A DNA stretch of 64,000 bases from Epiperipatus broadwayi (lineage: Eukaryota; Animalia; Onychophora). The stretch lies in contig JAQFVV010000005.1 of NCBI GenBank assembly GCA_028023455.1, positions 21,948,001 to 22,012,000 on the forward strand. The letters run 5' to 3'. Shown one piece after another: positions 857 to 56,435 of this stretch. The notes under the pieces are model-generated. The model ran no database searches. It was not told the origin of the DNA and saw nothing but the letters and a program-made list of their open reading frames with translations. Position 1 is the first letter of the stretch. Each line of letters begins with the position of its first letter. The position numbers and the translations under genes were made by a program.

Positions 857-3349
857 ATGAAGAGACATCAAAGTGGGGCAGAAAAGTGAAATTTTTTTTT
901 AAAAAACCTGGAAATTGCTGAAAGTCAAAGAAATTCATTGCATAGATTTTTTAAAGTTAATTCTGAGACAGAGTTGCCATCAGCATCCATGTCACATAAT
1001 TCTGAATTGCCTACATTTGAAACTTCTTCTTAAGAAGAGAAAGAAGAAGTTGAGAATCAAGAGGTTGAAATTGCTACTGAAAAAAGGGATTGCAAAAACA
1101 CAGAAGGCAGATATAGTCCAGAAAGATGCTTCGATATAGACATTGAAGTAATAAATGATATAGCTTTATGGCCAACAATATTAACAGGTGTTATTATTGA
1201 TCATATTCTTAATATGAAACCAAAAAAATATAGAGAATTTAAAATCAGTGTATAAAGACAGAGATAAAGTGTATTACAGAGGATTTTTTTAATGATCATT
1301 TCTATAGAAAGAAATCAAATGAAATTATGGAAAAGAGAAATTGGCTGATATTTTCAGAAACAAGCAAAAGTGTTTACTGCTGCCCTTGCAAATCCTTTTC
1401 AATAATAAAAGTCTAAATTAGTATCTGGTTTATAAAATTGGAGATCAATAACTGTAATTTTATAGGATCATGAAGTTTCAAAAGTACACATATCAGCCAT
1501 GTGTATTATGTATAAAAGATTAACATAATTCAAAAGAATTGATACTCAACTATTACAGAAAAAGAAGAATGTTATTGGAGAGAAGTGTTGAAAAGAATTG
1601 TATCAACAATAAAATTGTTGAATCGCTTAGGATTTAGGGATCACGATGAAAGCAAAGATTCCAATAGGAAAAAAAAATATTTAACCTGCTTGGAACATCT
1701 AAGCAAATATGATGAATTTTTGAAGTTGCATCTACAAAAATATGCCAACCAAGGTTGAAGAAATGTGACCTATTTATCTCATATTATTTGTGATGAATTT
1801 GTAGGTCTTATTGGAAATCAAGTAAGAGCAAAAATAATTAAAGAAATTAAATCTGTGACAAGTAAGAGCAAAAATAATTAAAGAAATTAAATCTGTGATT
1901 TATTATAATTATTGATTCCACCCCCAATGTTTCGCATGTCAATCAAGTAACTTTTGTGATATGTTCCATCCTGTGGTAATATAATGAAAAGATTTGTGGA
2001 ATTCATTCCCATAGATAAACACACATCTTCATATTTGGAACAAGAAGTTTTGCAAATGTTAATAAAATTAGAAGTGAATATTAAAAATTGTCGATGACAA
2101 TCATTTGATAATGCTTCTAATATGTCAGGGAAGTACTCGGCTTTGAAAGCACATATTAAAGAACATAGCCCAAGTGCAGTTTTTATTCCGTGTGCTAATC
2201 ATTCCTTAAATTTAATTTGAAATTTTACTGCAAAAAGCTGTAGCATTGCAATTGAGTATTTTATGTTTGTGCAGAATTTATTCACATTTTTTTCTGTGTC
2301 AATCCATTGCTGGAAAATTTTAACAAGAAATCTAGAAATATGTAAACATTCCATCACAGTCAAAAGAGTTAAGAGTTTCTAATACAAGATAATCAGTAAG
2401 AGCAGATGCTGTATTAGCTATAAAACTGGTTTCACCCATGTAAAAGAGACTTTAACTGAAATTTGTAATTCAGAAGAAAAAAAAAAGTTACCATAATGTA
2501 GGCGACTTCACTTCTGAAGAAAATGGACAAATATGAACCTGCCCTATGACAGTGATTTGGAATACTATTTTACAAAGAATAAATGCTATTAGTAAATCAC
2601 TGCGATCAGTGGAGTGCAAACTATTGAAAGGATCTATCCTAGTGAACTCATTAGAAAATTTTATCAATAATTTCAGAGAAGAATTTGAAAAAGAGGCAAC
2701 TGATATATCTGGGTTATCATTTAATGTGGAAGATGGACAAATTCGCAAACAACAAAAGAAAAATTGTTTTTGATGAAAACAAAAAAGTCAGACATGAATT
2801 TACAATAAGAGAAAATTTCATAGTCAATTCATTTTATGTCATTTGTGATAACACCAAGGCAGAACTATCTTGAAGAACTCAGACATATGAAGTTGTTGTA
2901 GAGCCTTTTTGAATATTTTTTGATTGGAATTTATCAATAGAAGAAAAAAAATAATGCGGTAAAAAAGTTTAAGGATATTTACAAAAATGACATTGATGTT
3001 TGTAATTTTGAAGTTGAATTTGATCATTTTTTAATATTTCTAAAAGAAAACAAGGATATCATAAAAACCACACTAGACATATATTGAGCCACCAAAGAAA
3101 TGTCTTGCACATTTCCAAATGTTGAAATATTATTGAAATTTTTTTTAACAATTCCCTTATCTAATGCGTCAGGAGAAAGATCATTTTGTTTTAAAGCATG
3201 CAAAAAATTATTTAAGGAGTACTATGGGAGAAGAAAGGTTAAATAATATGGCCATTCTGTATATAGAGCAGGAAATTTTAAGTCGAATTGACACTGCAAA
3301 AATAATTGATGAATTTGCAAGAAATAAAGCAAGACGAAAATTCATATGA
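857..3349 (+). pseudogene. hAT transposase pseudogene (many stops and frameshifts)
   Basis: Fragments MKRHQSGAEK, KRNWLIFSETSKSVYCCPCK (TTF-like Zn finger), SFDNASNMSGKYSALKAHIKEHSPSAVFIPCANHSLNL, and C-terminal dimerisation motif KNYLRSTMGEERLNNMAILYIEQEIL (ORF 3164-3349). Internal 40-bp tandem duplication at 1819-1898. Confidence 0.85.
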
Positions 3350-4943
3350 AAAATAGGTTTTTTAATAAATTCATTTAATGTGTTATGGTATGAAATTTTT
3401 GATTACTTTTCTTTTTTGTTAATAACTTAATGAGAGTTTCTTGAAATTTTTTTTTCTAACTTGAGTTTGAGGGCCTGAAACTTTTACCACTTGGCTTGAT
3501 CCATCTCTGGAAAACGAATGTCTCTGTCATTTTTTATATCACTTCTCTGCAAAAAAAAAAAATGTGACATTTTTCTATTCAAGAGATTTAAAAAAATTAC
3601 AAGAAGCAAGATCAAATGAATACGGCTGCTAGATAAGCTGGATGCTGCTGAATTTAATTAAAAGGGTTTCACACTTAAGGTTTTAAGAGATCATACTTTG
3701 TGGGGATGAAGCTTGCACTCTTTTCTTTGTCATAAAACAGAATGTTTATATTTTACTGCATCACCTAAACGTTTCAGAACTTGCAGATAAAATGGCTGAC
3801 CATTACAAACTAAATTTGAGGGGGAAATGCCATTTATGTCAAAAATAAAAAAATTCAGCATTGTTTTGACTTTGGACTTAACTTATGACACTTTCTAGGG
3901 ATGTGGTAAATTTAACATTTCAACATTTCAATAAACTCTCATAAACTTATGTTTTTATGATTTTTTGTAATCTGTTCCAAGCATTACAACTTTTTTTCTT
4001 GTCGTTTTCTGTAAACGAAAACAGAATTTCCCCCTGTCGAACTTTTCAATTATTATATAAAAATTGACAAAAATGCACATTACTAAACAATGTGTTACAT
4101 GGCCCCATTGGAAGATTGATGCAGAAGGGTCCCTACAAGAAACATGATATAACAGGCACTCAAACCAGAGAATAATTCTGATTATTTTTGTGCCCCCCTC
4201 GTATATCTGAATACCTTGATTTCCTTCACAAGTATGCCATTGAACGAAAGCTATGTATAATTAATCTGTGGATAGTCACTAAGAGATTTATTTTTAATAT
4301 TTCATCAAAATGTTAAATTATAATGGAGCTCTAAAATTGAAATGGTAGAATAAATTACATTAAGTACCAAATTATTACCAATGACGATCAAGATTTGATT
4401 GCTTAGTTATTGTGCTTTTCTTCAAAGACTTTTACATATATCCAACAATACCTCACTTAACATCTACTTCCTTAACTACGATTTGTAATAATGGTACTCT
4501 TATTCATTATACACAAATAAGCAGTTTATGCCAAACAATATTTTCTTGTCAGAGAATCACTCAATTTACAACAGTCATGCAGGTGCACTGCATGATTTAG
4601 TTTAGTGCTAGAACAATGGACTTTGAAGCTCAAGGTCCACTTCTGATACCTGAACATCTTATAAACTCCAAGCAAAAAGATATTTAATTATTATTATTTT
4701 TATTCATAAAGATGACTTCTTAACTTTTATAAAGTTGATATATATTGAGTACTGACTGTATGCATATTTTTTTTTGTATTAACTAAACTAAATGGTATCT
4801 ACTTAATGAATAATATTTCTGTAGTATAATTTTTACTACACCACTCCAAGGTAGAAGGGACTAGTTTCTATCCATTTTAAACACCTTGTGGAGAGATATA
4901 ATCATTAAACATATGACTAAAAACCTGAAAAAAAAAAAGATTC

Positions 4944-4985
4944 CCAAGATGCATGTTTTGCACAGAATCAGTACTCATCAGTTGT
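4944..4985 (-). ncRNA. Decayed R3-family hammerhead motif
   Basis: Minus strand ACAA-CTGATGA-GTACTG-ATT-CTGTGC-AAAA-CATGCA-TC-TTGG; G12 lost. Flanks resemble 50176-50240. Confidence 0.5.
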
Positions 4986-5619
4986 CCCAGATCACAACCT
5001 CTTACACATATATTTATCATTGTTCAGTATACATAGATAGCCAATTATTATAGTTTAATTGAACTCAGGCTTTCACACGACCCTCAACTATCTTACTGAA
5101 AAATAAAATCAGCCATGTTATCCATGAGTTGCAATATTAATCATTCTATCAAAACATCCAGATATCATATTGATTTCATGTTACAGTACTTATGGGTGTA
5201 AAATTAAATCTTCAAAGACAACGATATTACTGCTTTTCATACTGTGCAATCGCTGTTTACATTTAGCTAGCAAATCTTTTATGTAGTTTGCACAAGACAT
5301 CTACTGCAATGACAACAGTTAATCAAAATATAAACAAACAAGTTATCTGTTGAACAAAGTATAATTTATATAATTTTGATAAAAGATAAAATATGCATAC
5401 ATTAATTTGCATGTTTCATCTAAGCAATGGTGTTTTCTTACCAGCAAGTATTTGACTCAATAATGTTTTCTGAACAATATCCTGTAAAATATGTAGATCC
5501 AAATGTCAAGCTATTATACTCCTCATGCCAATTATGATGAATTAAGGAAAAGTAGTGCATCAATATGTATGAAATTTAGAATTAATTCTTCAATCCAATC
5601 TTGATAAGTGTCTATCCTT

Positions 5620-6474
5620 CGCATGATCAGCATTTCTTATGCTTGTTCGTAACTGTTATTAAAACAGGCAAAACTCTCCATACATTGTGCCATTCAGTGC
5701 AAGCCAGAGTAATCAATGAATGCCAGAAGGCTTGTGCATAAAATCCCAATCCAGTGCCTACTCATCCAATATCCCCAGATTAGTTTCTAGCTTGCAGATT
5801 TCATCAGTGAGGAGTCTTGGATCAGAGATCACTGCACCTAGATCTTAGGATCTAATGTAACCCTCCAGAAGCCACCTTTTATCTCTACTTAACTACAAAA
5901 CTATGAGTCTAAAATTGGAAAACACAATAATATTTTCAATCCAAGCTCATTAGCTTATAGTCATATAGGTCTGAACTCAGTTCAGTACCCATACATTTTG
6001 GTGCCTTTGGGTCTTTAATAACCATAGCCATCACCATTGTATTAGGCAGGGTTGGTGTTAAACCACTAAACATCACATGATCACCATTTCTTATGCTTGC
6101 TCATAACTGTTATTATTACTGTATGGATAGTTTCCTGAGTAATAGGATAGTAGTGGCTATGGTTATTAAAGAACCAAAGACACCAAAATGTATGGGTATT
6201 GAACTGAGTTCAGAGCTATATGAGCTAATGAGTTTGGATTGAAAATATTGTGTTTTCAATTTTAGATTCATAGTTTTGTAGTTAAGTAGAGATAAAAGGT
6301 GTAGTGCTCACAGATCCAAGGCTCCTCACTGATGAAAACCACAAGCTAGAAACTGGTCTGGGGATATTGGATGAGTAGGCACTAGATGGCAATTTTATGC
6401 ACAAGGCTTCTGGCATCCATTGATTACTCTAGCTTGCTGTGTGTGGCAATATGTATATTGAGTTTTGCCTGTTT
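5620..6474. mobile_element. R1 hammerhead-retroelement fold-back insertion (left arm >1 monomer, period 454)
   Basis: Antisense arm 5621-6113 wraps past its own start (CATGATC at 5622 and 6076); sense arm ~6139-6474. 15-bp TSD TAAGTGTCTATCCTT at 5605-5619 and 6475-6489. Confidence 0.9.
6314..6372 (+). ncRNA. R1 type I hammerhead motif (weakened stem II)
   Basis: ATCCAA-GGC-TCCTCA-CTGATGA-AAACCACAAGCTA-GAAA-CTGG-TC^TGGGGA-TA-TTGGAT. Confidence 0.65.
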
Positions 6475-9258
6475 TAAGTGTCTATCCTTTTATAACCTTT
6501 ATAAAAATAACACATATATATAAAAGATAAATCATTCAAAAGAAGAAGAAACCAGCAGGAAAGATATGACTTATTTCTTAGAAATCTCTGCTATAGATAG
6601 CAAAAAGAATTTAGGTATCTCTTAAACATTATTATTATTATTTGTTAAGCCTTCAGCATAATCATGTATTAAAGATAGTAATTTGTAAATAACCATAATC
6701 TATGTAATTATTTGTTTGATTTTACAATGACTGATTTTTAATAGTTCTATAACTGATTAATTACTAAATTAAATATATTTATTTAATGAAGATATATTCT
6801 TTGAATTTGATTTTTAAATAAATAGCCCACAGTCTTAAGATAAATGAAACAAACAAAATATATTTAATGAATTAAAAAAAAAAATTGAATGGTCTGTTGT
6901 CTAGAACTTCATAAGAAGTCTGGTCACCACTAGTAGCAGGATTGAGCCACAACGAATGGACATGGAGCTCTAAAGTTAGTCTAAAATGTTTTAAAAACTT
7001 CAAATTAACAGAATATTCAAAATGAAATGTAATAGGTATTTATTTTTTCTATAGAAATTGAAGGTAAATGAGCCAATCTCTCCTACACTGTTCTAGCTGA
7101 TGGCCAATAGTTTATCATATTCTTGTTCTAAGAGCTAAATATCATACATTTGCATCTATAGTTATTTTATTAATCTTTGAATTATTTTCCAAAAGATTTG
7201 CCTCAACACATAGTTGCTCTCCAGGCTGTGCTTTCTTCAGATGATTTTTTCCCAATTAACAAATAGAGATCTTTCCAAGATACCATGATGCTTTTGTACC
7301 TAAATTTTGACTTACCTGTTAATCTTCTTTCTTTATCTAATTCAACTTACCTGTTGATCTTCTTTCTTTATCTAATTCAGCTAAAAATATTTGTATAAGA
7401 ACGTTATTATAATTCCTTAGTTCAACATGCATCACTCAATGTAGTTTTCTGTTGTAGTCTGAACCAAGATTTTTTTTTTGTTGTTTACATTATTCAGATG
7501 AAGAGTCAATGTCACAATCTTTAGCTAAATGTCCACCACTCTCTTGCAGTGCTAACATACAAAAAAAATAATAATAATCAAGAGGCTATGTGATGACATG
7601 AGTACCAAAAATAACACTGAGATTCAATCCAGAGATCTTGAGCACTTGAGGCCACCATTTTACCACTGCTAATTTATGCATGACAAAAATGACCAGTAGT
7701 TTACATAGAGTCGAAAAATTCTAACTTGTGCAGGAATATCCCAAAACTGATTTTTACTCAGTTATCTTAACCACTTCCGTTATGACAGCTAACACTGACA
7801 GTTTATTACATGGGCAGCTGAGATGTATATGGTTTTATATATATAAATCAATGCACGATAGGATGAGAAGTGGAAAGATATTTAACTTATGGGTCGGTCA
7901 TTTCATTGCATTAAACCATGCAGCCATAGCATATAGTCTAAAGAATTTTCATCATTTATTTATTTCAATATTGATCAAAGTAAGAATTATCGTTTACGTT
8001 CTTCTTTTTTTTTTCAGTTTCTTTAACTAAGTCGTTTACTGAATGTAAACCTATTACTTCGCCCCCGTCTCGTCAAATGTTGCTGGTCTGGATTCTAACA
8101 AGACTAAGATCTGACCAACTATTAGCGGCACAGTTTACATGTAATAGTGAAGACATTTTCAACTTAAATGCCCAGATTTATTCATCCTCCCCACCCACCC
8201 TTTTTTTTTTAATTATTTGAAATGAGTCAATGTTTCATGCCTAAAAAAATAAAAAGACTTCATATATGAAATGAAAATAGAATCAATAAAATTATTAAAT
8301 AATAATAATCAAATGATTAGCTACACGACAGGCCATGTGATTTAGTTTCGATCAAGGAATCTTAAATTTTCGAGTCCGTTTCTCTTCCAGTACGCTAAAT
8401 CTATTCTTAAATGATTTAAAAGTTCCAAAGAAATCCGCTAGAGGACTACTTATAGTTGACACATCACATCAATATAACTAGTAAATAGGACTGTTTTTGC
8501 GAAGCTTTGAGGTAAGTGGTCAAAAATAGTCTATTTTACAATTTGTTCTACTGCTACATTTTCATTATGGGTATTGAATGATTATTATTTTTTTGTAAGT
8601 GTATATACAAACAAATCCCCTAATAGATAAAAACAAGTTTATAAAAATCGGATACAGACATTCAACCTGTAGAGTAGGCTTGTTTTGCTCCATCCTCGTG
8701 CTATTATTTAGATTTCAATTAAAGGAAATAAAAATAATAATGCACTAATTAAAGAATGTTACAGAAGTAATCGTTTATTACCATTAAGATATTAAAGGCC
8801 TTTTGAATATGGATTTGTAAAAGAATATAACCAGAGCGAAGATTAAGTCGTATAAAATTTGTTCACTGGGATGAAAATCTCACATCAGGCTACTGCTTCC
8901 TTCAAGGGTTGAGATTTCAAATTATTTTCTGCAAAAAAAAATGTCAAATTTTTTACTTAAACTTGAAAAAAAAAAAATTACCTTTTGATTTTAAAATATC
9001 TTTTCTGTAATTAAACTATAAATTTTACTTTAGTTTTAGTAAGGTCGTTATGTAACCATGTGTAAATAAAAAAATCCATTATATTTTCTCATTATTTATA
9101 CTAATCTTACTTAAAAACTACGGTATCATCACAATCACTAGGCTTTTTTGTTGATATCCTCTAGTGGCAGTTTAGTTAAGCTTGGAATTGTTGAACGTAA
9201 TATTTATCAGTTTTCTGCTCGAAGTCAACTTGATGTTATAATAAGGCCTATAACTAAG

Positions 9259-27344: not shown

Positions 27345-28807
27345 AACATTATGTTATGTTAACAAACCGACCTCTTATGAGCATGTGTTCAATGAGTTCA
27401 TTTTTTTAATTGTCTAACTTGATTTATAGAATAATTAATCTAAACATGTTTCCCCTCAAGAAATATTATTTTTAGGAGTAACATAATTCTGTTATTAAAT
27501 TCCATTCTACAAGAATTTTTTTTTTTTTAATCATTCTCCATGGAAAAAAATTAACCTTATTATTTTACGTGCTTGCTCTTATCTGCCCTCTATATGCAAT
27601 AAAAAAGAAATAAAAACATTGCAAACGTAATTAAAACTGCCAATTTAATTTTTCTTGTTGAGAACATTTAACTATTTGAAAATATACATCCACTTTCATA
27701 AGTAATATTAAAAAAAAAAAAAAACATGTTTTATGTTAATGTTTAACTTTCAAAAAAATTAATTTCACTTTCATTTAAAAAAAAAAAAAACGAATTATTT
27801 TAATATAAAAATATATCTATTAGATTATGCATCCCATTTATTTAAAGAAAGGTAAAGTTATAAAGCATATATATATATGCAGCACATTTATACTGTGGAT
27901 CCTATTATCAATGTATTGGTGCTTGTGTGTCTAATCCAAATGAGGCTGGGAATTTTATTCACTAGTGAGGAATAACTTATATTCCCACTGACTAACCAGA
28001 ATTGTGTAGATCGGTTAATTTTGAACAAGCTGCCTGAAAAGATTCTTGAGCCTTTTGCTATGGCCATAATCTGGGATTCAAAACTTAAGTCAACTGAGTC
28101 ATCTAATTAAAAGAAATTGTCATTTTACTTGAGAAATGTTCAGGTTTTTTCACTTTCATATTGCAAATTTTATGACAAATTAATATTTATAATAATCTTT
28201 TAATGGATTTTCATAAAACTTTCATTGTTGCAGTAATCATAATATATGGTTTCCACGGCGAGAATCCACTTAGATCATTTGACTATAAAAGATTAAAATG
28301 AAAATTTAATTTTTTATCAATTTTTATGATTGGAAACTATTTAATAGATTAAAATTCAAGTTGTAACAATTCTCTAGATATCAGCAATAATCCCTAAGCA
28401 AAGAAGTAGAAGATTCTTTCCAGGAAGAAACACACTTCTGTGCAACGGAAGCTGTTTTTATATGGATGTTTACAGAAAAATAAATATATTTTTATTTTTT
28501 CAAATAATTAATGATATAGAATTGATTGATATATCAATCCTTTTGAGATTACTGTCAGAGTTATTGAGGTCATATTTAAATATAACCAAAACTCTTTTAA
28601 CTGCTGATAAAACTTGCTTTTATCTTATATGAATCATATACTTTTTTTTATAAATTTTACCCAATATCTCGACCATATTTTGTAGTTGTTATCAAGAGTT
28701 ATATAGAGGTTTTACTCAAATATACAAAACTTTTTCCATTCCTGATAAAAACTTGCTAGTGTAACATATTTTATAATTATTGACAAGAGTCATATATCAT
28801 TATTTAT

Positions 28808-29189
28808 AACCCAATAAACATCACATGACCACCACTTCTTATGCTTGTGTATAACTGTTGTTAAAACAGGCAAAACTCACTATACATATTGCCACACACA
28901 GCAAGCTAGAGTAATCAATGGATGCCAGAATGCTTGTGCATAAAATCCCCATCTAGTGCCTACTCATCTAATATCCCCAGACTAGTTGCATTAGATCCTA
29001 AGATCTAGGTGCAGTGCTCTCAGATCCAAGGCTCCTCACTGACGAAGGCCACAAGCCAGAAACTAGTCTGGGGATATTGGATGAGTAGGCACTAGATGGC
29101 GATTTTATGCACAAGCCTTCTGGCATCCATTGATTACTCTAGCTTGCTGTGTGTGGCAATACGTATAGTGAGTTTTGCCTGTTTTAACA
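28808..29189. mobile_element. R1 fold-back insertion (NIF3L1 intron 1)
   Basis: 12-bp TSD ATCATTATTTAT at 28796-28807 and 29190-29201. Confidence 0.9.
29024..29082 (+). ncRNA. R1 type I hammerhead ribozyme (consensus-like copy)
   Basis: ATCCAA-GGC-TCCTCA-CTGACGA-A-GGC-CACAA-GCC-A-GAAA-CTAG-TC^TGGGGA-TA-TTGGAT; predicted GUC cut after 29068; palindromic stem III ACTAGT. Confidence 0.8.
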
Positions 29190-30615
29190 ATCATTATTTA
29201 TTTGAAAAAATGAATGATATTTGTTATGTACATTATTGAATACATATAATTAACAAATAATATATCATATGAACAGTATACTGTGCTCCTAAAACCAGTG
29301 ATCTGTTCAACAGATGGACCACGTAATACATAACCAATAATCAAAGAAAAATAATTGATAAATAAAATGTATATATTTATTATTATCTTTTATGGAAAAA
29401 TTAATTCTGAATGTACATATTATAATTGCACAGTGACTTTATCAACTTTCTTATAATAATGTTAATATACTTATAAAATATATACATATTTAAAATATTG
29501 TAAGCACTCCTTAGCCAGCATTATGCATTGTTTCTATTTGTATATGTATTTGACTAACTAATAATGTTGATATGAGAAAGTGGGCATTCTTTACAAATTT
29601 GGTGGACTCTAGTGTGTCAGGAATTGCTATTATGGTATGTGTATTTAGTGTTAATTTCTGCATAAAAGATATATTTTCAGTGCTACATATTTAATAGTTG
29701 TTGTTTATTTATGGGTTTATTAATATTATTTAAATTTATTGTTGAATTAATGACAGGAGTTGTATTAATTAAAAATATGAAAATAATATTGTTACCAATG
29801 AAAATAATTTATTGAATAAATAAATAAAATGCACATATTTATTATTAAATTTACAGCAAAAAAGATTACCATGAATTAGTTTTTGCTTGCTTTTATCCAA
29901 TAAATTCTTATCATAGATGGATTGCTTTTTGAAATTTCATTTTTTATGGATTTGCATTTCCCTTATATCTGTATTTTAATACTTACAGATTAAATATAAG
30001 CAATTATATACCCTTTTTATGCACTTATAAAATACAACATGTTTTTTTTTTCTTATTGCTTTGTTTGTTAACAGTTTCTACTGTCCAGCAGTCTTCATCA
30101 GATCTACAAAAAGAAACAATAATAAGATGTTATATGGAATAAGTATATAGAATGAGGATATAATTGATTATATTTAATAATGTAATCAATGCACATTACT
30201 TAAAGAAAAAGAAAAGAGATTACAAAAATTCTTGCATTTTGTTTTATTAATGTAGCATTAAAAAAAAGAAAAGAATATAATCTGTATAAGATTTTTATAA
30301 TAGTGGTTCAATATTATATTTTATAAATTTCATTTGTTTTCATTTTTGTCACATCTTTTATTATATTTTAATTTTTTCACATAATTAAGTATATATAAAT
30401 TTATTTTTAAAAAAAGTGTGAATCATATGAAGTAAAAAGTTTTTAATATAATTTATCCAAGATTGGGTCATTTTGAAAAGAATAACATTTTGATTAATTA
30501 ATTAATAAAGATTGTATAATTTTAATTGTATGAGTTCATATTTCTCAAAGTAATTTCTTAATAAGATTAACATGAAGTTGTGCTAGTATAATCATTTAGA
30601 AGCATATATTTTCAG

Positions 30616-43890: not shown

Positions 43891-44899
43891 AGTTTGTCAT
43901 TAAACATTTTTTTATGAATACTCTTTGCAGAAAATTTTTTTGTCCATAAAATCACATAATGGAATGGTGGTATATTCTTCAAGTATAGTAATCATTTTAT
44001 CTATAGTAATAAAATAGTTAATCTCTTTGGACGTCATGAGAGGTATGAGGCCTGAAAATGACAAAACTGAACTATGATCCATGGATCTTAAGCTCCCAAA
44101 TTTTCATTCTATTATAAAACATGCGAGGTTTTGAGATACTATTACTTTGCATTATTCTGTCATCTTTAATATATACAGAAAATCTGTTACTTCTATTATA
44201 ACTATTTTATTTTCACTTATAATTTATTAATTTTCCTTGTACACAAAACTAACCATCACTTAACTTTTAGCTTGAATAAAATAAATGCGATCTCAAGTCA
44301 GTGAACACTAGGTGGCACTTCAAACTGTTCTGGATTGGTCTTTTCATGCAGTTGGCTAGAATTTAAAGCTATTATGATGTTTGAAATAATTAGGCTGCTA
44401 GCTTGAATAACAAAAAAATAAAACTTAATATGTGGATAGATACATTGCCTCCTGATACGAAGAATGTCACTTTAATCAGAATCAATCGTAGGAAACTATT
44501 TGCACTGCCACCTAATGTTTGTTGACTTATTTAATGTTTGCATAGTTGAGAGTGTAGTAGAACAGTAGTCAACAAACATTTTTAATTGCACACCTTCATC
44601 ATAAAGAAAAGTAATATGCAACTCATATGTCTGAAATTATTTTAAAAAATAAAAGACAGAATTATATGAAGATTAATTAAATACCCCAAATCCAAAACTC
44701 AACCAAACTAGCCAAGAAAATAAAATCAAAAACAACCAATGGTTTCACTGCTACAAGCAGACTTCTCAAGTGTAAAAAACTACAAAACAACACCATATTT
44801 ATAATAAACATTACCCACAAATCCATTTATTTCCCATCCACCCTTAATATTAAAAGAACTTTTAAATAAGTTAATTGCTTCAGAATAATAAAGATTTTT

Positions 44900-45463
44900 T
44901 TAATTTTTTTTTTTCCATATGTCAAAGCATTGACCAGGAAGCAAATCCGGGCCAGCTGCTTGGTAGGCAGCTATGCTAACCACTTGGCCACCAATGCTTG
45001 ACAAGATTTTTTTAATACTTTTTATTTCATTTCTTTTAAAAAAGACAACCTTAGCTTTATCAAAATTAGTAGTGCGGCTTGTATCTTTTTCATGGACATA
45101 TAAAGCAGAATGAAGATATTTATTTCTAACCTTACTTTTATGTATATTTATTCTTTCATTTAAGCTCAAACTACTCTGACCTATATAAACCTTCTTAGAA
45201 AAACAAAGGATAATATACACTACACCAGGAATAGTTTTCCTATCAAAAATTTCCTTTGTATTATTTAATAAATTATTCAAAGTAATACCCTTTTTCCAAG
45301 CAATTTTACTTCCAAACAAATTATTATTCTTACATACAATTTTATAAGAAAACAATTTAAATGGCAAAGAAATAAAATCATATTTTTCTTTATCCTTTAC
45401 ATCCTTACAAATATTAACTAATAAAGTACTTTTAATAAATTTATCAGTGTAGCTAACACTCAA
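44900..45463 (-). pseudogene. Penelope-type GIY-YIG endonuclease remnant (left arm; 3' end runs into a SINE)
   Basis: PGVVYIILCFSKKVYIGQSSLSLNERINIHKS...SALYVHEKDTSRTTNFDKAKVV. Confidence 0.85.
44905..45002 (-). mobile_element. tRNA-Gly(TCC)-derived SINE, ancestral-like form
   Basis: 71-nt body 44997-44927 GCATTGGTGGCCAAGTGGTTAGCATAGCTGCCTACCAAGCAGCTGGCCCGGATTTGCTTCCTGGTCAATGC aligns with eukaryotic tRNA-Gly(TCC); tail TTTGACATATGG-An; 14-bp TSD AAGATTTTTTTAAT at 44891-904 and 45003-016. Confidence 0.85.
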
Positions 45464-45799
45464 ATAATCTTTATAAAATTGATCTTTCTGAAAGAAAGCT
45501 ACCCCACTAGAATTATTTAATTTCTTATTCCTATAACAATAATTTCTTAAAGCATCTACTTTAAGGTCTATAATTAAACCTAATAGCTATCAGTCTATCT
45601 CACAAAGTAGCTGCTTTAAGAAATTATTGTTATAGGAATAAGAAATTAAATAATTCTAGTGGGGTAGCTCTGTTTCAGAAAGGTCAATTTTATAAAGGTT
45701 ATTTGTGTTGGCTACTCTGATAAATTTGTTAAAAGTATTTTATTTACTAGTAATATTTGTAAGGATGTAAAGGATAAAGAAAAATATGATTTTATTTCT

Positions 45800-46096
45800 T
45801 TGCCATTTAAATTGCCTTATAAAATTGTATGTAAGAATAATAATTTGTTTGGAAATAAGAAAATTGTTTTGAAAAGGGGTACTACTTTGAATAATTTATT
45901 AAATAATACAAAGGAAATTTTTGATAGGAAAACTATTCCTGGTGTAGTGTATATTATCCCTTGTTTTTCTAAGAAGGTATATATAGGTCAGAGTAGTTTG
46001 AACTTAAATGAAAGAATAAATATACATAAAAGTAAGGTTAGAAATAAATATCTTATGCATTGTATGTCCATGAAAAAGATAAGGCCACACTATTAA
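45800..46096 (+). pseudogene. Penelope-type GIY-YIG endonuclease remnant (right arm)
   Basis: PGVVYIIPCFSKKVYIGQSSLNLNERINIHKS; frameshifted downstream. Confidence 0.85.
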
Positions 46097-46769
46097 TTTT
46101 GATGAAGCTAAGATTGTTTTCTTTGAGAGAAATGAAATAAAAAGAATTAAAGAATCCTTATTATTGAAAATTTATTATTCTGAAACAATTAACTTATTAT
46201 TTAAAAGTTCTTTTAATATTAAAGATGGATGGGAAGTAAATGGATTTATGGATGTTTAATATAAATATGGTATTGTTGTGTAGTTCTTTACACTTGAGAA
46301 GTCTACTTGTAACAGTGAAACCATTGGTTGTGTTTTTGATTTTATTTTCTTGGCTAGCCTGGTTGAGTTTTGGATTTGGGGTAATTTTAATTATTTATTG
46401 ACTAGTTTAGCTTTATGCTCATAATGTTTATATGAAGATTAGTACAATCCGAATGATTTCTGTTACATAAGGTAAAAATATTTACTTGGTAGTCACTTAT
46501 TATGATTGGTTGCAGTTTTTAATAGACCTCAAAAAAAAAAATTTTTTGAGTGTCTCCTGGATAGCTTCTTATCAACTTTGCTAACTATTGGAATAGAGGT
46601 CATTGTGTTTAATTAGTAGCACTTATTTATTAACAACACTATCATCATCATCATTTATATATCACAAGTAGCATTAATTTAGTTAGCCACTTGTTAATAA
46701 ATTTTTCTTTAATTTATCATGACATTTAAGACATCCCCACATTAAATACTCATATTTGTTGTTTTCCAG

Positions 46770-48907: not shown

Positions 48908-50175
48908 AACTATGGTTAATAAAGTTATATTTTTAAATTGTCTTTTTGTTTTTCCTACACTAGACATAACCACATCGTGTTAAAACATAATTCTTAGCAT
49001 CAAAAATTATAATTCAAGGTTTTAAAGTTGTTCAAAATATTATCATCACCTTTACCATTCTAGAACATTTGTCAATATTGTCCAATACCTAAACTTTATT
49101 TTCTTTCTCATTCATAGATTTTTTTGGAGGAGGAGAGAGTATTAATTCCAGTGCTAATATTGGTAATTTATTTTCATTGCATATAGTCATATGACATTGT
49201 TTTCTTTATATCAATCGTTATCAATTCCTGTAAATCCATTATTATGTAATGTTTTATTTTCTTTCTTTTTTTTATGATATTAATCATAGATTTTCTAATC
49301 ATCCATGTCCACAACTCTACTGTCTTTTTATTTTTGAAATCATTTTATTCAATTTCGATCAATAGAGTACCTGTAATCTGTGACTTATATACACAGTGTT
49401 CCCCAATGAAAAGGTGACTGGGTTTTTTTTCTAAATTGCTTGCAGTGCCATCTATAAGTCAATGCATGTATTATGTAGTGATATAGTTCAATTGGCTACC
49501 TATATATACTGAACAATGATAAAGCTATTTGTAAGAGACTGTGGTCTGGGTCAACTAGTGAATGCTGGTTCAGCACAAGATGTGCATCTTGGGGATTATA
49601 CATCTTTTGCATATGTTTTTGGTCATATGTTTATAATTATACCTCTCCACAAGCTATTAAAAATGGATAGAAACCAGTTCCTACCTTGTGTGAGAGTGGT
49701 ATTGTGAAAATAATACTACAGAAATATTCATTCGGTAGATAATCTCTAATCTAATGAATGACTAATAAAAATTAATATACTTCCATCAAATAGTTTGTGT
49801 TAAATGTTGTGAGAGCAGTGTTCGACACATCGATTAAATTGTAGTTATTGGTGCTCTCTCTTTATATATATATTGAACAATGATAGATATATTACTTTTT
49901 AAGTACGAGATTGTGATCTGAGCTAACTGATGAGTGGTGGTTCAGCACAAATGTACATCTTGGGAATTGTACATCTTTTCCACATATTTTTGGTCATGTT
50001 TATGATTACAACTTTCCATGAAGTGTTAAAAGTGGATAGAAACCAATCCTTATCTTGCATGAGTGGTGTAGTGAAAATTGCACTTCAGAAACATTGAGAT
50101 ATAATAAACACTTCCATACTTCTCCATTCTTTTTAAATTCATATAAATAAAGATATAATAAAAGTCAAATGATCC

Positions 50176-50215
50176 CCAAGATGCATTTCGTGCTGAACCA
50201 GCACTCATCAGTTGG
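50176..50215 (-). ncRNA. Canonical minimal type I hammerhead ribozyme (R3b copy 1)
   Basis: CCAA-CTGATGA-GTGCTG-GTT-CAGCAC-GAAA-TGCA-TC^TTGG; all core nucleotides present; 6-bp stem II; palindromic stem III ATGCAT; AUC cut between 50180 and 50179. Confidence 0.88.
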
Positions 50216-50577
50216 CCCAGGTCACTATCTCTCACATATATCTCTATTATATGCAAAGTATTTATCTAGAGTAAATTGTTACATTTAACCATTGTCAAAC
50301 TCCCTCCACTCACAACTTTGACGTCATCCATTTCAGATAAATACACTAATGATTATTACTAATCATTTTCGAAACTAGATATTATCTCTAGCACAGATAT
50401 AAACTTTAAACCTCAGTTAAAGATTAATATATCTGATTTTTTAAATTTACACACACGGAGTTATTCACCTTTCTCTGTCCTGTATATAATATCTTTAAAG
50501 ATATAATAAACACCTCTATACTTCCCTATTCTTTTTAAATTCATATAAATAAAGCTATAATAAAAGACAAATGCCCC

Positions 50578-50617
50578 CCAAGATGCATTTCGTGCTGAAC
50601 CAGCACTCATCAGTTGG
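50578..50617 (-). ncRNA. Canonical minimal type I hammerhead ribozyme (R3b copy 2)
   Basis: Identical core and stems 402 nt from copy 1. Confidence 0.88.
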
Positions 50618-52574
50618 TCCAGGTCACTATCATATATATCTATTATATTAAGAAACATTATTCATTAAGTGAATAATCTCTAATTTAATGAATGTCTAAT
50701 AAAAATTATTTAAGTGTTAAAATTCTTCAAAAAAAATTACTGCAGGAATTAAGATAGCATCACAAAATATCAAATAAACAGAACAACTGAGCGGCGTATT
50801 CTATATATGGACATTTGTGTTTCACAGATTGGTTTGTATATTCATCTGCAGTCATATTATTTTGTCTTTTTATCCCCTCTCCTCTTTCTTGTGGTAGTAA
50901 TAACCATACTCGTTTGCGAATGACTGCTGCATTTTTTCTCTCTTACTCTGCTAAGTGTGACATGTGAATATAGGTGCGTGCTTTTACGTTTAGTAATTCT
51001 GGTATAAGTTGAGCTAAATAATTATTTTTTGATTACACTTACATTAAGTAATGATTATCTTCATTAATAGTTCTCATTGCATAATATAGATATATCCAAA
51101 CACATACGTTACCATATTAATAAATAAATAAAATTCCGCCTGTAGCACATGTTTCTGTCTGAGATAGAATTATTTTTATCAATGAGGTAGTACATAAAAT
51201 CTTGTATACAACACGTGTTTGCTTCCTTCCATTCATGACATTTTAAAACGTCAATAATTTAATACTTTATATACAATCGCAAATATTAATATTTTTCATT
51301 ATTAAATATAATTTCATGTTTGGGAGTGGTTTATCTATTATCTAACTTGATGGTCAGTGACTTACGATTCACAAAAGTCGAAGGGATGGGTTAAGTACAG
51401 AAGTAATTCAACTTTTTGTGGAACAAAAAACTTGAAGCAATTATGTTTTTATCCAAACATGGATTTAAACATGTTTCCTACACATTAACTGACCCATTGA
51501 TTCTAATATAGATAAATAAATTAAAGATTTATGAGTCGTTACGTTAATCCAAAGTAGCACGATATTCTAAAGAATTTTAGGTTAAAAATAAGTCGTTTAA
51601 ATGATATACAAAAATAATATTTATTGCCATAATAAATCAACTCCGGTCTTAGAGAATAAATCTATTCCGGATATTCGAGGTTGCAATGAAATCCTTTTTT
51701 AAATGAAAGCAGTAGTATCCGTCTAAATAAATTACGTACCCACTATATAGTGTTTACTTTTATTTAGTGGCCTACGTAAGCATATACAACGAGGTTCGAA
51801 AATACTATCCACCCCGTAATAGCTTTTATGTCACGTGCTACATTTTTATTATGTTTACAAAACCCAAAACTGATTATTTTTTTAATATATATATAAGGTA
51901 GGAATTGTCCATGGCATAAATAAGAATACAAATGGCAATAATTACAAAGACAAAACAAAAAGTCGGAGGATAATATAGTATGCTTAATATTTTATAAAAT
52001 CACTTCTGTTCATCTCACTTAGCTGGCCGATTCGCGATACCGCCCACTCCCCTAATCCTGGGCCTTTAGGCTAGTACCGTGTTAGTCACACACATTCCTT
52101 TGTGGATACAATGATTAAAGAGTCAGAAATAGTCCTTACTACTGAAAAAATAAGATTTCAAAAAAAATACTGAATTTGATCACACAATTAAATATTTAAT
52201 TGAAATATTTAATTTTTAATTATATGCCTAATAAAAAAAAAAAGTATAATTAAATGAAAATTGTCATCTTAATTCATTAATAATTATTATTAACTATTAC
52301 AACTAAATCCGTTTTTTCACTATTTTCTTTTATCTTTTAGTCATTTTAATTTACTTCAGGGATCGGACAGCCATTTATTACATTAAATGTCCCAATGGTA
52401 TTGCGTGTTTCTGCTACTACATTTTTGTCTTTTACTTACACACGCAGTAATTCGGATTCGAATCTTTTTTTTCTTCTAATTTTTTCTTCTATTTTTTTTT
52501 TAAAAATTCTGATGTTAAAACGTGTATGCTCGTTTATGAATGGCTGCTAATGATGATAATCATCATCATCATTA

Positions 52575-55533
52575 TCAACCATTATCAATCCACTGCAGGA
52601 TGAAGGTCTCTCCAAGTTTAATCCATCTTCTCCGATCTTTAGCTTCTCTTCTCCACATCACCCCTACACATTTTCTTATTTCATCCATCCATCTTACATG
52701 TGGTCTTCTGGGTCTTTTACAATCTCTTGGAATCCAGTTTAAAATTTCAATTGTCCATCTATTATCATCTCTTCTAGCAATATGTCCAGCCCAACTCCAC
52801 TTCAATCTTTTAATTTTTTCAATGAGGTCAGTAACACCTGTTTGTTCTCTTACCCATACATTGCGTTTTCGATCTCTTCTTGTTACTCCCAACATACATC
52901 TCTCCATACTTCTTTGAGTGGTCTGAAGTCTCTGTATTGATCTTCTATTAAGTGTCCAAGTCTCAGATCCATAAGTAAGAACTGGTAAAACACATTTGTT
53001 AAAAACCTTTCTTTTCAAACACATAGGCATATTTCCTTTTAATATCAAGTTATTTCTACCAAAAGCACTCCAACCAAGTTTAATTCTATGATTAATTTCC
53101 TCTATTATGTTTCCATCTGTATTAATAATCTGACCAAGGTATTTGTAACTCTTAACTTCTTCTAATTCATCATAATCAATCTTTATTTTCATATTTTGAG
53201 CAAATCGATTAAACATTACTTTAGTCTTTTTAACATTTATCTTTAGTCCTACTTTCATCTGATAACTCCTGCAACATTTCCTGCAGTTCGGAAGCATTAT
53301 TTGCAAAAACAACTACATCATCTGCGAAATCTAAATGACTTAAATAATCTCCATTTACTTTCACTCCTTTAGTTTCCCATTTTAATCCACAAAATACTTC
53401 TTGCAGCACTGCTGTAAAAAGTTTTGGAGATATGGAGTCACCTTGTCTTACACCTTTCTCAATGTTGACTTTCCCAGTATCATTATGTAATCTAATTGTT
53501 GCTGTTGCATTTTTATAAATATTCTTTAAAATATGACAATATCCTGGATCTATACCTTGATGATCCAATGCTTTAATCACTGAAGAAATGTTTATAGAAT
53601 CAAATGCCTTTTCATAATCTACAAATCCAAAACATAATGACAACTCATATTCATTTGTCCTTTCTATAACTTCTCTCAATACTTGAATATGATCTACTGT
53701 ACTAAAACCACTTTTAAATCCAGCTTGTTCTCTTGGTTGGTGAAAATCCAACGTTCTCTGTAGACGAGTTGTAATTATCTTGGTAAAAATTTTATATAAA
53801 ACTGATAAAAGGCTGATAGGTCTGTAATTTCTAATATCTTCTTTATCACCTTTTTTAAATATTAATATTATTACTGCATTCTTCCAATCATCCGGTACAT
53901 CTTTATCATTTAGACATTTGGTATATAACTTTGCTAATATTTTTTCTGTTTCTTCACCTGCTTCTTTTAATATATCAATCATAATTCCATCATTACCTGG
54001 AGCCTTTCCTTTTTTCATACATTTAATTGCATTTCTCACTTCTTCATTTAAAATTCTGGGCAATTCGGAAGATGTAATAGATATAGGAGGTACTTGTTCT
54101 TTATTACTATATAATTCTTGATAAAAATCTTCTACCAATTTCATAATGTCATCTCTCTTTTTAGTAATAATTCCATCTTTTTCCTTATTGCAGATATAAA
54201 TTTCCTACCAATACCAAAATGTTGTTTTACATTCTTAAGACTTTTATTTTCTTCTACAGCTTTTCTTGCTAGTTCACAGTTATACTTTCTTATATCATTT
54301 TCAACTCTTTTCCGCACCATTTTACAAAATTCGAGATATTCAATTCTTTTTAGTGCATCATTCTTGCATATCTTCATATTCCTTCTTTTCTTCATAAGTT
54401 CTCTAGTCTCAGTAGAAATTTTATTAGTCAATTGCTGCTTTTTTCTACCAGCTATCTTTGTTGCAGTTTTTAAAAGTGTATCAGTTATTTTCATATTAAT
54501 TTCATTCAAATCTGAATCATGTTCAAAATCTACTAATACTTGAAACCGATTTGTAAGTTCTAATTTAAATTCATTAGAATGTTTCTGAAGATTAGGAATA
54601 TCAACTGTAAATATAGTTTTTCTTAATAATTTTTGTCTCTCTAGTTTTACATTAACATGTATCTTACCCCTTACTAATCGATGATCACTTCCTGTGTTAA
54701 ATTTATTAAGAACATTACAATCTTGAAATATGTATTTCCTGTTAGTCAAAATATAATCCAATTCTGCTGTACCTTCATTTGGATGCTTCCATGTCCATTT
54801 CCTTCTAACATTTTTCTCAAAAAAAGAATTCATAATATAAAGTTTTTCCTTCTCTGCAAACTCCACAAGTCTATGTCCTCTCTCATTTCTATTACCATAA
54901 CCAAAATTACCTACAACACTTTCATCTTTCATTTGTTTACCAATTCTAGCATTAAAATCTCCCATAACAATTTTAAAATGTTGTTTACTCTGATCAAAAG
55001 CCTTTTGTACATCCATATAAAAATCTTCTACTACTTGTTGGGGCATAAACCTGAATTATCTGCATTTGATATCTGCTATTAAGTTGTATAACTAATCTTG
55101 CCACTCTGTCTGATGCACCATCAATCTCCAGAACATTGTTCTTCCACTTTTTATTTATAATGAATCCTACTCCACTTGTATTTCCAATATTTGTGCCTTT
55201 ATAATAGAGCATATGTCCACTTTTTAAATCAATTGTCTCTTCACCTTTTCTTCTAACTTCACAAAGTCCAATAATATCCCATTTAATATAAGAGAGTTCT
55301 TCTTCTAATTCTTGCAATCTTCCTTCACTTGAAAGTGATCTGCAGTTGTAAGTACCTAAATAAAAAGTTGTCATCAAATGGCAGCCTGGGTCTGCCTCCA
55401 GGATATTCTTAGCACCCTCCGCCTTCGGCCACCAACCGCTGCCTTGGTTGGTGACTTTACAGCCTCCTGGGATTAAGGGCCATGCTTTATTTTTGTCTGT
55501 CATAATTGTATAATTGGGAAAAATCTTTATCAT
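52575..55533 (-). pseudogene. RTE endonuclease/reverse transcriptase ORF, frameshifted
   Basis: Four overlapping ORFs in shifting frames reconstruct one polyprotein. Confidence 0.9.
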
Positions 55534-55658
55534 TTACACAAACATTCATTCTGCCTTATCAGGCACTGAGAAGAAAGACCATGGTGTTTCTTGATCTTAA
55601 ACTCAGAGGTAAAAAGCCAATAAACTCACCACGCTGGCTAATGCGTGTTGGTGAGCAG

Positions 55659-55825
55659 CCCATCCATGTTCGTATACTATATGAATAAACATATAGTAAT
55701 AACAGCTGCAACGACAAGAACGTATGGAGTGGACATTAGGAATTTGCCCTGCTCGGTTCCTTTAAGGTCTCCAAGAGGAATCAAAGGGTCTCCTTTCAGT
55801 TAATAGCAAACTCCTTTCTGCAGCC
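55659..55825 (-). ncRNA. HDV-like (double-pseudoknot) ribozyme at the RTE 5' end
   Basis: P1 GGCTGCA (55825-19) / TGCAGCT (55710-04) with G1.U wobble; P3 ACG/CGT; L3 TTCTTGT; P4 TACTATATG/CATATAGTA; J4/2 CGAA (catalytic C at 55672); P2 CCACTCCAT/ATGGATGG. Confidence 0.8.
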
Positions 55826-56435
55826 AATGATGATAATAATATATTGTATATATTTACATAAAAAAATTTTAAAAGAATGATATTTTATTGACTAATGAAT
55901 GATAATGCAATACTGCCCCGAGGAATTAGCTCAGAAGTTAGAGCAACATCTTATGAACTGAAGATTGCAGAATTGTTTTTGGCTGTGGAAAGTTAAGATT
56001 TTTTTAAATGTTCATCAGTTGCATAAAACTTAAAAAAAGAGATGCTAACTTTTTTTCAATGAACTAGAAGTGCGTCCTGATTAAATTTTGAAACATCCCC
56101 CCCCCCCAAAAAAAAAAAAACTATGGGGAGGTGAAAAGTATAATCATATAATTTTATTTAATTTTTGTAAATCTGAGGATTATAGATGTAAATCTGGTAA
56201 AATATAATATTCAGCTCTCATATCAAGATGCTTCAGATTAGTCTACATAAGTAAGAATTTAGGTTAAAGATACTGTTCTTATCTTTATAAAGTCCCTATC
56301 TTGTGTTCAGGTGGAGATGTCCCTCTATAGTCAAAAACTACATCGTTTGACTATTATACAAATGTTTAAAGCCATGTGGGAAACGGTTAAAACCTTTCTC
56401 TTTCTAATTAATCATTCTATTTAACTAATAAAATG

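Follow-up and report, generated by a model that had tools for sequence, protein, structure and literature searches.

A two-armed, one-tailed Penelope-like remnant in Epiperipatus broadwayi and the probable mobilization of a hammerhead repeat by Penelope-type machinery

Which enzymes copy and insert the non-coding hammerhead repeats of an animal genome? The question is raised by a stretch of 64,000 nucleotides from the onychophoran Epiperipatus broadwayi (contig JAQFVV010000005.1, positions 21,948,001 to 22,012,000; hereafter the window, to which all coordinates without a locus prefix refer), where the remnant of a Penelope-like element (PLE) at 44662-46441 lies together with copies of two candidate ribozyme repeats, R1 and R3, and a long interspersed nuclear element (LINE) of the RTE type. 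A sequence-only reading of the window had proposed that PLE machinery mobilizes both repeats. We find that 44662-46441 holds the 3' part of one PLE twice, in copies truncated independently at their 5' ends, tails outward, made from one template and joined head-to-head, and that this layout recurs in the same PLE family, in other GIY-YIG elements of the genome and in the non-coding R1. The locus is best explained as one old integration of this family, for which we use the working name PLE-A, and R1 was most likely copied and inserted by a PLE-type reverse transcriptase and endonuclease (RT/EN) acting in trans.

Anatomy of the element at 44662-46441

In a repeat search of the window, 44679-46386 emerges as a large inverted repeat with blocks that are 92-100% complementary. 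The gap-free identity between the arms is 92.8%, and both encode a GIY-YIG remnant (Pfam PF01541, E-values of 7e-6 and 4e-6, above the curated cut-off), which bears out the earlier claim of two tail-outward copies of a PLE 3' part. The left arm (44674-45563, minus strand) spans PLE-A unit positions 1976-2773, comprising the end of the open reading frame (ORF) with the GIY-YIG domain and the 3' untranslated region, and terminates at a short 3' end without a tail. The right arm (45561-46393, plus strand) spans unit positions 1932-2773 and is the only one to continue into a tail of 34-36 nt (46394-46429, plus strand, ending at 46427/9), which equals positions 1-36 of the next unit and matches the bases that follow the upstream pseudo-long terminal repeat (pLTR) of an intact copy described below. 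The arms meet at 45561-45563 with an overlap of 3 nt (TTA); the 43-bp or so at 45562-45604 that had been taken for a spacer is right-arm sequence (unit positions 1932-1975). The GIY-YIG remnants lie in an open frame of 187 aa on the left (44900-45463, minus strand) and one of 98 aa on the right (45800-46096, plus strand), the latter broken on both sides. The element is a dead, ordinary 3' fragment pair of a PLE.

Two further observations support a single integration event. A 14-bp direct repeat adjoins both outer ends (44662-44675 and 46428-46441), as the sequence-only reading had recognized, and in 812 mismatched flank pairings the 99th percentile is only 12; the true length of this target-site duplication (TSD) is 10-14 bp because 2 bases per side, on the left the last 2 of the repeat, overlap the element ends. 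In addition, the arms have 7 derived variants in common over 569 columns, whereas 629 further pairings of family copies share 6 at most (mean 1.3), and therefore both arms were copied from one template.

The left arm is about 110 bases longer internally than the right in the arm alignment, and it holds a tRNA-like unit of 98 bp with an A-run (44905-45002, minus strand), into which the 187-aa frame extends and which is enclosed by its own 14-bp duplication (44891-44904 and 45003-45016). Similar units are dispersed through the genome (at least 3947 first-look candidates, 92-95% identity), and the one in the arm is therefore a later insertion of a short interspersed nuclear element (SINE) and not a part of the PLE. 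The Rfam tRNA model scores it at 27.6 bits, just below the gathering score, and ARAGORN gave no match to it.

The PLE-A family and its insertion layout

With the right arm as query, at least 6716 first-look PLE-A candidates were found in this AT-rich genome (5.6 Gb, ~29% GC), their 5' truncation being variable; the best copies are 88-92% identical to the arm and extend upstream to differing extents. The recovery of an intact PLE, suggested earlier as a check, succeeded with the sampled genomic locus L032 (L-numbers denote such loci throughout), where positions 4332-6695 form one ORF of 787 aa with an RVT_1 match (E-value 3.9e-8, residues 372-511) and a GIY-YIG block at the C-terminus, with which the window arms align. 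Read directly, the translation has Cys-Phe-Cys between the GIY-like and YIG blocks and His residues downstream, in keeping with the CCHH zinc-finger signature of canonical PLEs. Direct repeats at L032:3873-4080 and 6653-6853, spaced about 2775 bp apart, represent the pLTR, a partial tandem upstream of the ORF, from which the unit length of 2773 bp was taken. PLE-A is a canonical endonuclease-positive (EN+) PLE.

The arrangement of the window element is not peculiar to it. In the sequence sampled, neighboring PLE-A 3' ends occur nine times in the order minus-plus (-,+), never as (+,-), and three times on the same strand, while among the 150 best GIY-YIG matches genome-wide, which represent other PLE families, all 20 close opposite-strand pairs are (-,+). 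Exactly one outer end carries the tail in 8/9 PLE-A pairs, and the inverted arm of the PLE-A copy in L013 consists of the tail alone; by eye, the other eight of nine single PLE-A copies inspected have no inverted tail at the 5' end. Readable PLE-A duplications measure 8-14 bp. These features have been published for PLEs, namely a 5'-truncated and inverted copy lying to the 5' side, a TSD of variable length and a tail of 30-40 bp that is often found at one end only (PMC8557442; also PMC8969392), as has a target bias for TA-rich or microsatellite sequence (PMC8557442). The element at 44662-46441 has the published PLE insertion form and is a known kind of structure.

This recurrence also bears on how the palindrome was made. 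Errors of replication or repair can generate large palindromes, and a 3-nt overlap at the joint would suit a later event at the DNA level, in which a simple copy truncated at its 5' end folded back or was duplicated in inverse orientation after insertion, as well as it suits joining during integration. Such an origin is hardly credible here, however, as the duplication encloses the whole arm pair, the outer ends differ by a family-specific tail, and the layout is seen at nine PLE-A loci and in 20 GIY-YIG pairs, always in the (-,+) order and never as (+,-).

R1, R3 and their probable mobilizer

The same layout was found in R1. The full R1 is a non-coding unit of 448 bp (L070:334-781), and its copies carry a predicted minimal hammerhead of type I with the core CUGANGA, a short helix II, GAAA and a 6-nt palindromic helix III; hammerheads with a small palindromic helix III are typical of PLEs (Cervera and de la Pena, 2014, PMC4209133). 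Identity with the R1 copy of the window reaches 94-99% in the best copies of the genome and, with copies up to 99% alike, the family was active recently. Within the 64 kb of the window there are 18 R1 3' ends (5600-61300), against 6 in the other ~255 kb examined, a density which suggests local clustering or nesting of insertions.

An R1 head-to-head pair at 28804-29197, with the putative hammerhead core at 29039-29068, has a tail on the left arm only and a duplication of 11-12 bp. Among 24 young R1 loci, inverted arms are present in 20, a partial tandem in many and an arm consisting of the tail alone in three. The tail equals unit positions 1 to 40-58, i.e., the start of the next unit, and, of the 19 insertions with both ends readable, 18 carry it at one outer end and not at the other; in a first sample, R1 3' ends were ordered (-,+) eight times and (+,-) once. 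Duplications of 10-14 bp (modal 13) were found in 9/17 evaluable young loci, with a null 99th percentile of 9, and those of the R1 pairs in the window are about 7-14 bp. Priming via short pairing between target and RNA is suggested by the overlap of these duplications with the element ends, which amounts to 2-6 nt on both sides. R1 hence carries the PLE-type integration signature of two arms, one tail, partial tandem and a duplication above 4 bp.

This is better support for a PLE-type mobilizer than the similarity in TSD size on which the proposal had leaned, since head-to-head arms, a one-sided next-unit tail, partial tandems and microhomology at all three joints are common to R1 and the PLE families of the genome. 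The size ranges are indeed alike (8-14 bp for PLE-A, 10-14 bp for R1), but duplication size was rejected as a discriminator between classes, the A-tailed tRNA-like SINE in the left arm having 14 bp too. A fixed hairpin geometry shared with R1 was likewise discarded, as the head-to-head joints of young R1 loci overlap by 0-7 nt at positions that vary from copy to copy.

The unit junctions of PLE-A (46393/46394) and R1 (e.g., 29190) look alike, with a T-run followed by AAT(T/A)A at the short end and a TGT(A/G)ATGTTTAT stretch that both tails contain. The resemblance may be a common recognition feature or a chance product of AT-rich sequence.

Retrotransposons of the LINE type are the obvious competitors. 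The RTE of the window (at about 52560-55837, minus strand) ends in a (GAT)n run, and two sampled loci place RTE-type tails in contact with the elements discussed here: at L088:885-925 the short 3' end of R1 adjoins an inverted (GAT)n tail, and at L028:3150-3200 a (GAT)n tail adjoins the 5' end of a PLE-A copy. Together with the ~14-bp duplication of the SINE at 44905-45002, a LINE-type event, these contacts would favor R1 and R3 being SINE-like passengers of this RTE or another LINE, their likeness to PLEs being coincidental. Nevertheless, a SINE that depends on a LINE is recognized by a shared LINE 3' end and an A-rich or microsatellite tail, and neither R1 nor R3 fits this description when compared with the window RTE: both lack similarity to it and a repeat tail, R1 showing neither an A-rich nor a microsatellite end where the RTE has its (GAT)n. 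A one-sided tail, near-universal inverted arms and partial tandems are marks of PLEs (PMC8557442), and the contacts at L028 and L088 fit, and are explicable by, the known bias of PLEs for inserting into microsatellites. We therefore consider LINE passengers very unlikely, in agreement with the earlier judgement that the RTE was the poorer candidate. As R1 bears every mark of PLE integration and none of a LINE-dependent SINE, a PLE-type RT/EN acting in trans is most likely responsible for it.

A different objection is that the form of the template and not the identity of the enzyme dictates the outcome, as any RT that copied a multimeric or circular ribozyme RNA would yield partial tandems and tails, and R1 could then use an RT from outside the PLEs. 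The tail does equal the start of the next unit in PLE-A and R1, which needs a template that is circular or longer than one unit, and retrozyme RNAs are known to circularize (PMC7229834). This would leave unexplained why a 3' end stands at each outer side and why the tail is confined to exactly one of them, two features that R1 shares with coding PLEs genome-wide, and no other element class with the layout was met in the sample, in which LINEs were not surveyed. A non-PLE enzyme is thus unlikely, if conceivable.

Integration by PLE-type RT/EN could proceed as follows. The endonuclease would make a staggered cut at the target, and element RNA in multimeric form would be reverse-transcribed from both 3'-OH ends, each of which pairs with it over a few bases. 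Priming from one end would start at the unit boundary and from its partner 35-55 nt beyond that point, and the two cDNAs would then be joined where they meet. This scheme can be taken further, in that PLE integration may always be two-armed, with a stagger of ~13 bp, priming over 2-6 nt in two fixed registers (the boundary and 35-55 nt in) and arms that possibly derive from different RNAs, so that two junctions between PLE-A and R1 would each record a single event in which both were copied. We put this forward as a tentative extension which is more doubtful than not. If true, the two loci would be direct physical proof of trans-mobilization and would give a concrete model for the undefined transposition cycle of PLEs.

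The first of these junctions is at L007:1493-2538, where a PLE-A minus arm with its tail (1493-2403) adjoins an R1 plus arm (2404-2538) with a gap of at most 1 nt; the R1 arm has a short 3' end and a 25-nt internal deletion in the hammerhead. The second is at L017:2688-3845, where a PLE-A plus arm is cut at unit position 2467 (locus position 3350) and followed by R1 unit positions 341-448 and then by a further R1 unit. By a rough estimate, ~0.02 such exact abutments of PLE-A and R1 would be expected by chance in the sample, and as leads the two contacts speak for the movement of R1 by PLE-type machinery.

R3 is represented by fewer data. A young copy at 50106-50649 (minus strand) comprises 1.35 units of 402 nt, has a duplication of 9 bp and no inverted arm, and sits inside an older related array; R3 likewise has a putative hammerhead core with a 6-nt palindromic helix III. 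With a single clean insertion as evidence there are too few copies to establish a tail rule, and the movement of R3 by PLE-type machinery is likely but thinly supported, so that the original proposal for the ribozyme repeats is upheld for R1 and only faintly for R3. R3 or R3-like sequence is also found next to PLE-A at three loci. At L032:3536-3872, a 3'-terminal R3 piece of 160 nt (3700-3860) lies directly upstream of the intact PLE-A, ending ~12 nt before its pLTR, and is preceded by a further hammerhead-like repeat piece (core near 3571-3597), an array that looks like the serial joining of 3'-terminal fragments. A 12-bp repeat around this composite was discounted, being low-complexity TA-rich sequence that does not adjoin the ends. 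An older R3-like unit (L004:671-862, minus strand) forms another mixed head-to-head arrangement with a PLE-A plus copy, whose 5' end is within ~10 nt of it, and in L014 an R3-like hammerhead stretch (~1040-1122, minus strand), seen by eye and without a BLAST match, lies ~35-50 nt upstream of a different PLE-A plus copy.

The core at L032:3571-3597, beside PLE-A, is a third hammerhead-like type with a different helix II (AGACUGC...), which also occurs in the window at 30101 (minus strand).

Several results weigh against a PLE origin for the movement of the repeats. BLAST found no DNA similarity of R1 or R3 to PLE-A, nor to 30 GIY-YIG loci of other families, a small sample of PLE families in which none matches the PLE-A 3' part. 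Motif scans showed no canonical hammerhead in or beside these 30 loci except for two R3-like copies in L043 and L049, and such copies were taken for incidental neighbors. Among PLE-A and the 30 loci, there is accordingly no apparent autonomous partner PLE for R1 or R3, and PLE-A is not the partner of R1 by sequence. The hammerhead calls for R1 and R3 are themselves made from motifs alone, as Rfam gave no hammerhead match to R3, nor, in gathering and E-value scans, to the window and the R1 unit. In the PLE-A pLTR, a helix II-like hairpin followed by GAAAC is present, but the hammerhead-like core reads CTTGAGAA, which is non-canonical; a motif scan of PLE-A found no CTGANGA, the canonical core thus being absent, and an Rfam search of PLE-A loci including the pLTR, at E-values up to 10, gave no hammerhead match. 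The lack of a canonical hammerhead is still compatible with PLE membership, because such a ribozyme in the pLTR is typical of canonical PLEs and not universal, Naiad and most Chlamys PLEs being without it (PMC8557442). No shared duplication was found around the mixed pairs in L004, L007 and L014, and the junctions of PLE-A with R1 and R3-like repeats could be rearrangements or neighboring insertions. Lastly, the R1 and PLE-A samples are small and biased toward the best-scoring copies, and the duplications of many old PLE-A copies are unreadable in their TA-rich surroundings.

Comparison with known systems

PLE-A resembles the PLEs described by Craig et al. (2021, PMC8557442) in its single ORF, which encodes RT and, at the C-terminus, a GIY-YIG domain with two Cys between its name-giving motifs, in a pseudo-LTR that arises from a partial tandem and in frequent 5' truncation. 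The inverted copy, one-end tail, variable duplication and target bias are shared as well. It differs in its pLTR, where the canonical CUGANGA core is missing from an otherwise hammerhead-like stretch, and the copy in the window differs in being a dead 3' fragment pair.

The mobilization of hammerhead repeats by PLEs is not a new idea and is in print (PMC7229834; PMC8969392; bioRxiv 10.64898/2026.07.22.740005). PLEs were proposed as the mobilizers of animal hammerhead repeats, or retrozymes, by Cervera and de la Pena (2020, PMC7229834), and Li, Clavereau and Pollet (2026, bioRxiv 10.64898/2026.07.22.740005) drew on co-occurrence and pLTR homology to make the same case. With the link so far resting mainly on these two lines, R1 adds evidence of a different kind, namely a recently active, non-coding repeat with a predicted hammerhead, in which the PLE integration signature can be followed in full at the level of single base pairs. 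Like the metazoan non-LTR retrozymes and the minimal hammerhead repeats associated with PLEs (PMC4209133; PMC7229834; bioRxiv 10.64898/2026.07.22.740005), R1 (448 nt) and R3 (402 nt) are short, AT-rich and non-coding, and they appear to share the type I hammerhead core with a 6-nt palindromic helix III, in addition to partial tandems, duplications above 4 bp and co-existence with intact PLEs. They differ from them in having no pLTR homology among PLE-A and the 30 GIY-YIG loci and no match to the Rfam models, and R1 differs further in occurring mostly as dispersed head-to-head pairs instead of long tandem arrays.

The integration mechanism of PLEs is still called undefined in the literature, and the one-tail rule and joint microhomology of R1 strengthen the published hypothesis and suggest a testable model of priming. 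A parallel is the twin priming behind the 5' inversions of L1 insertions, where each 3'-OH end of the staggered break is also thought to start a cDNA, the products being linked through microhomology. The inverted stretch of an L1 insertion, however, derives from another portion of the same RNA, nearer its 5' end, and the 3' end of the element is found at only one side. In PLE-A and R1 it is found at both outer sides, and a single segment is represented in each of the two arms.

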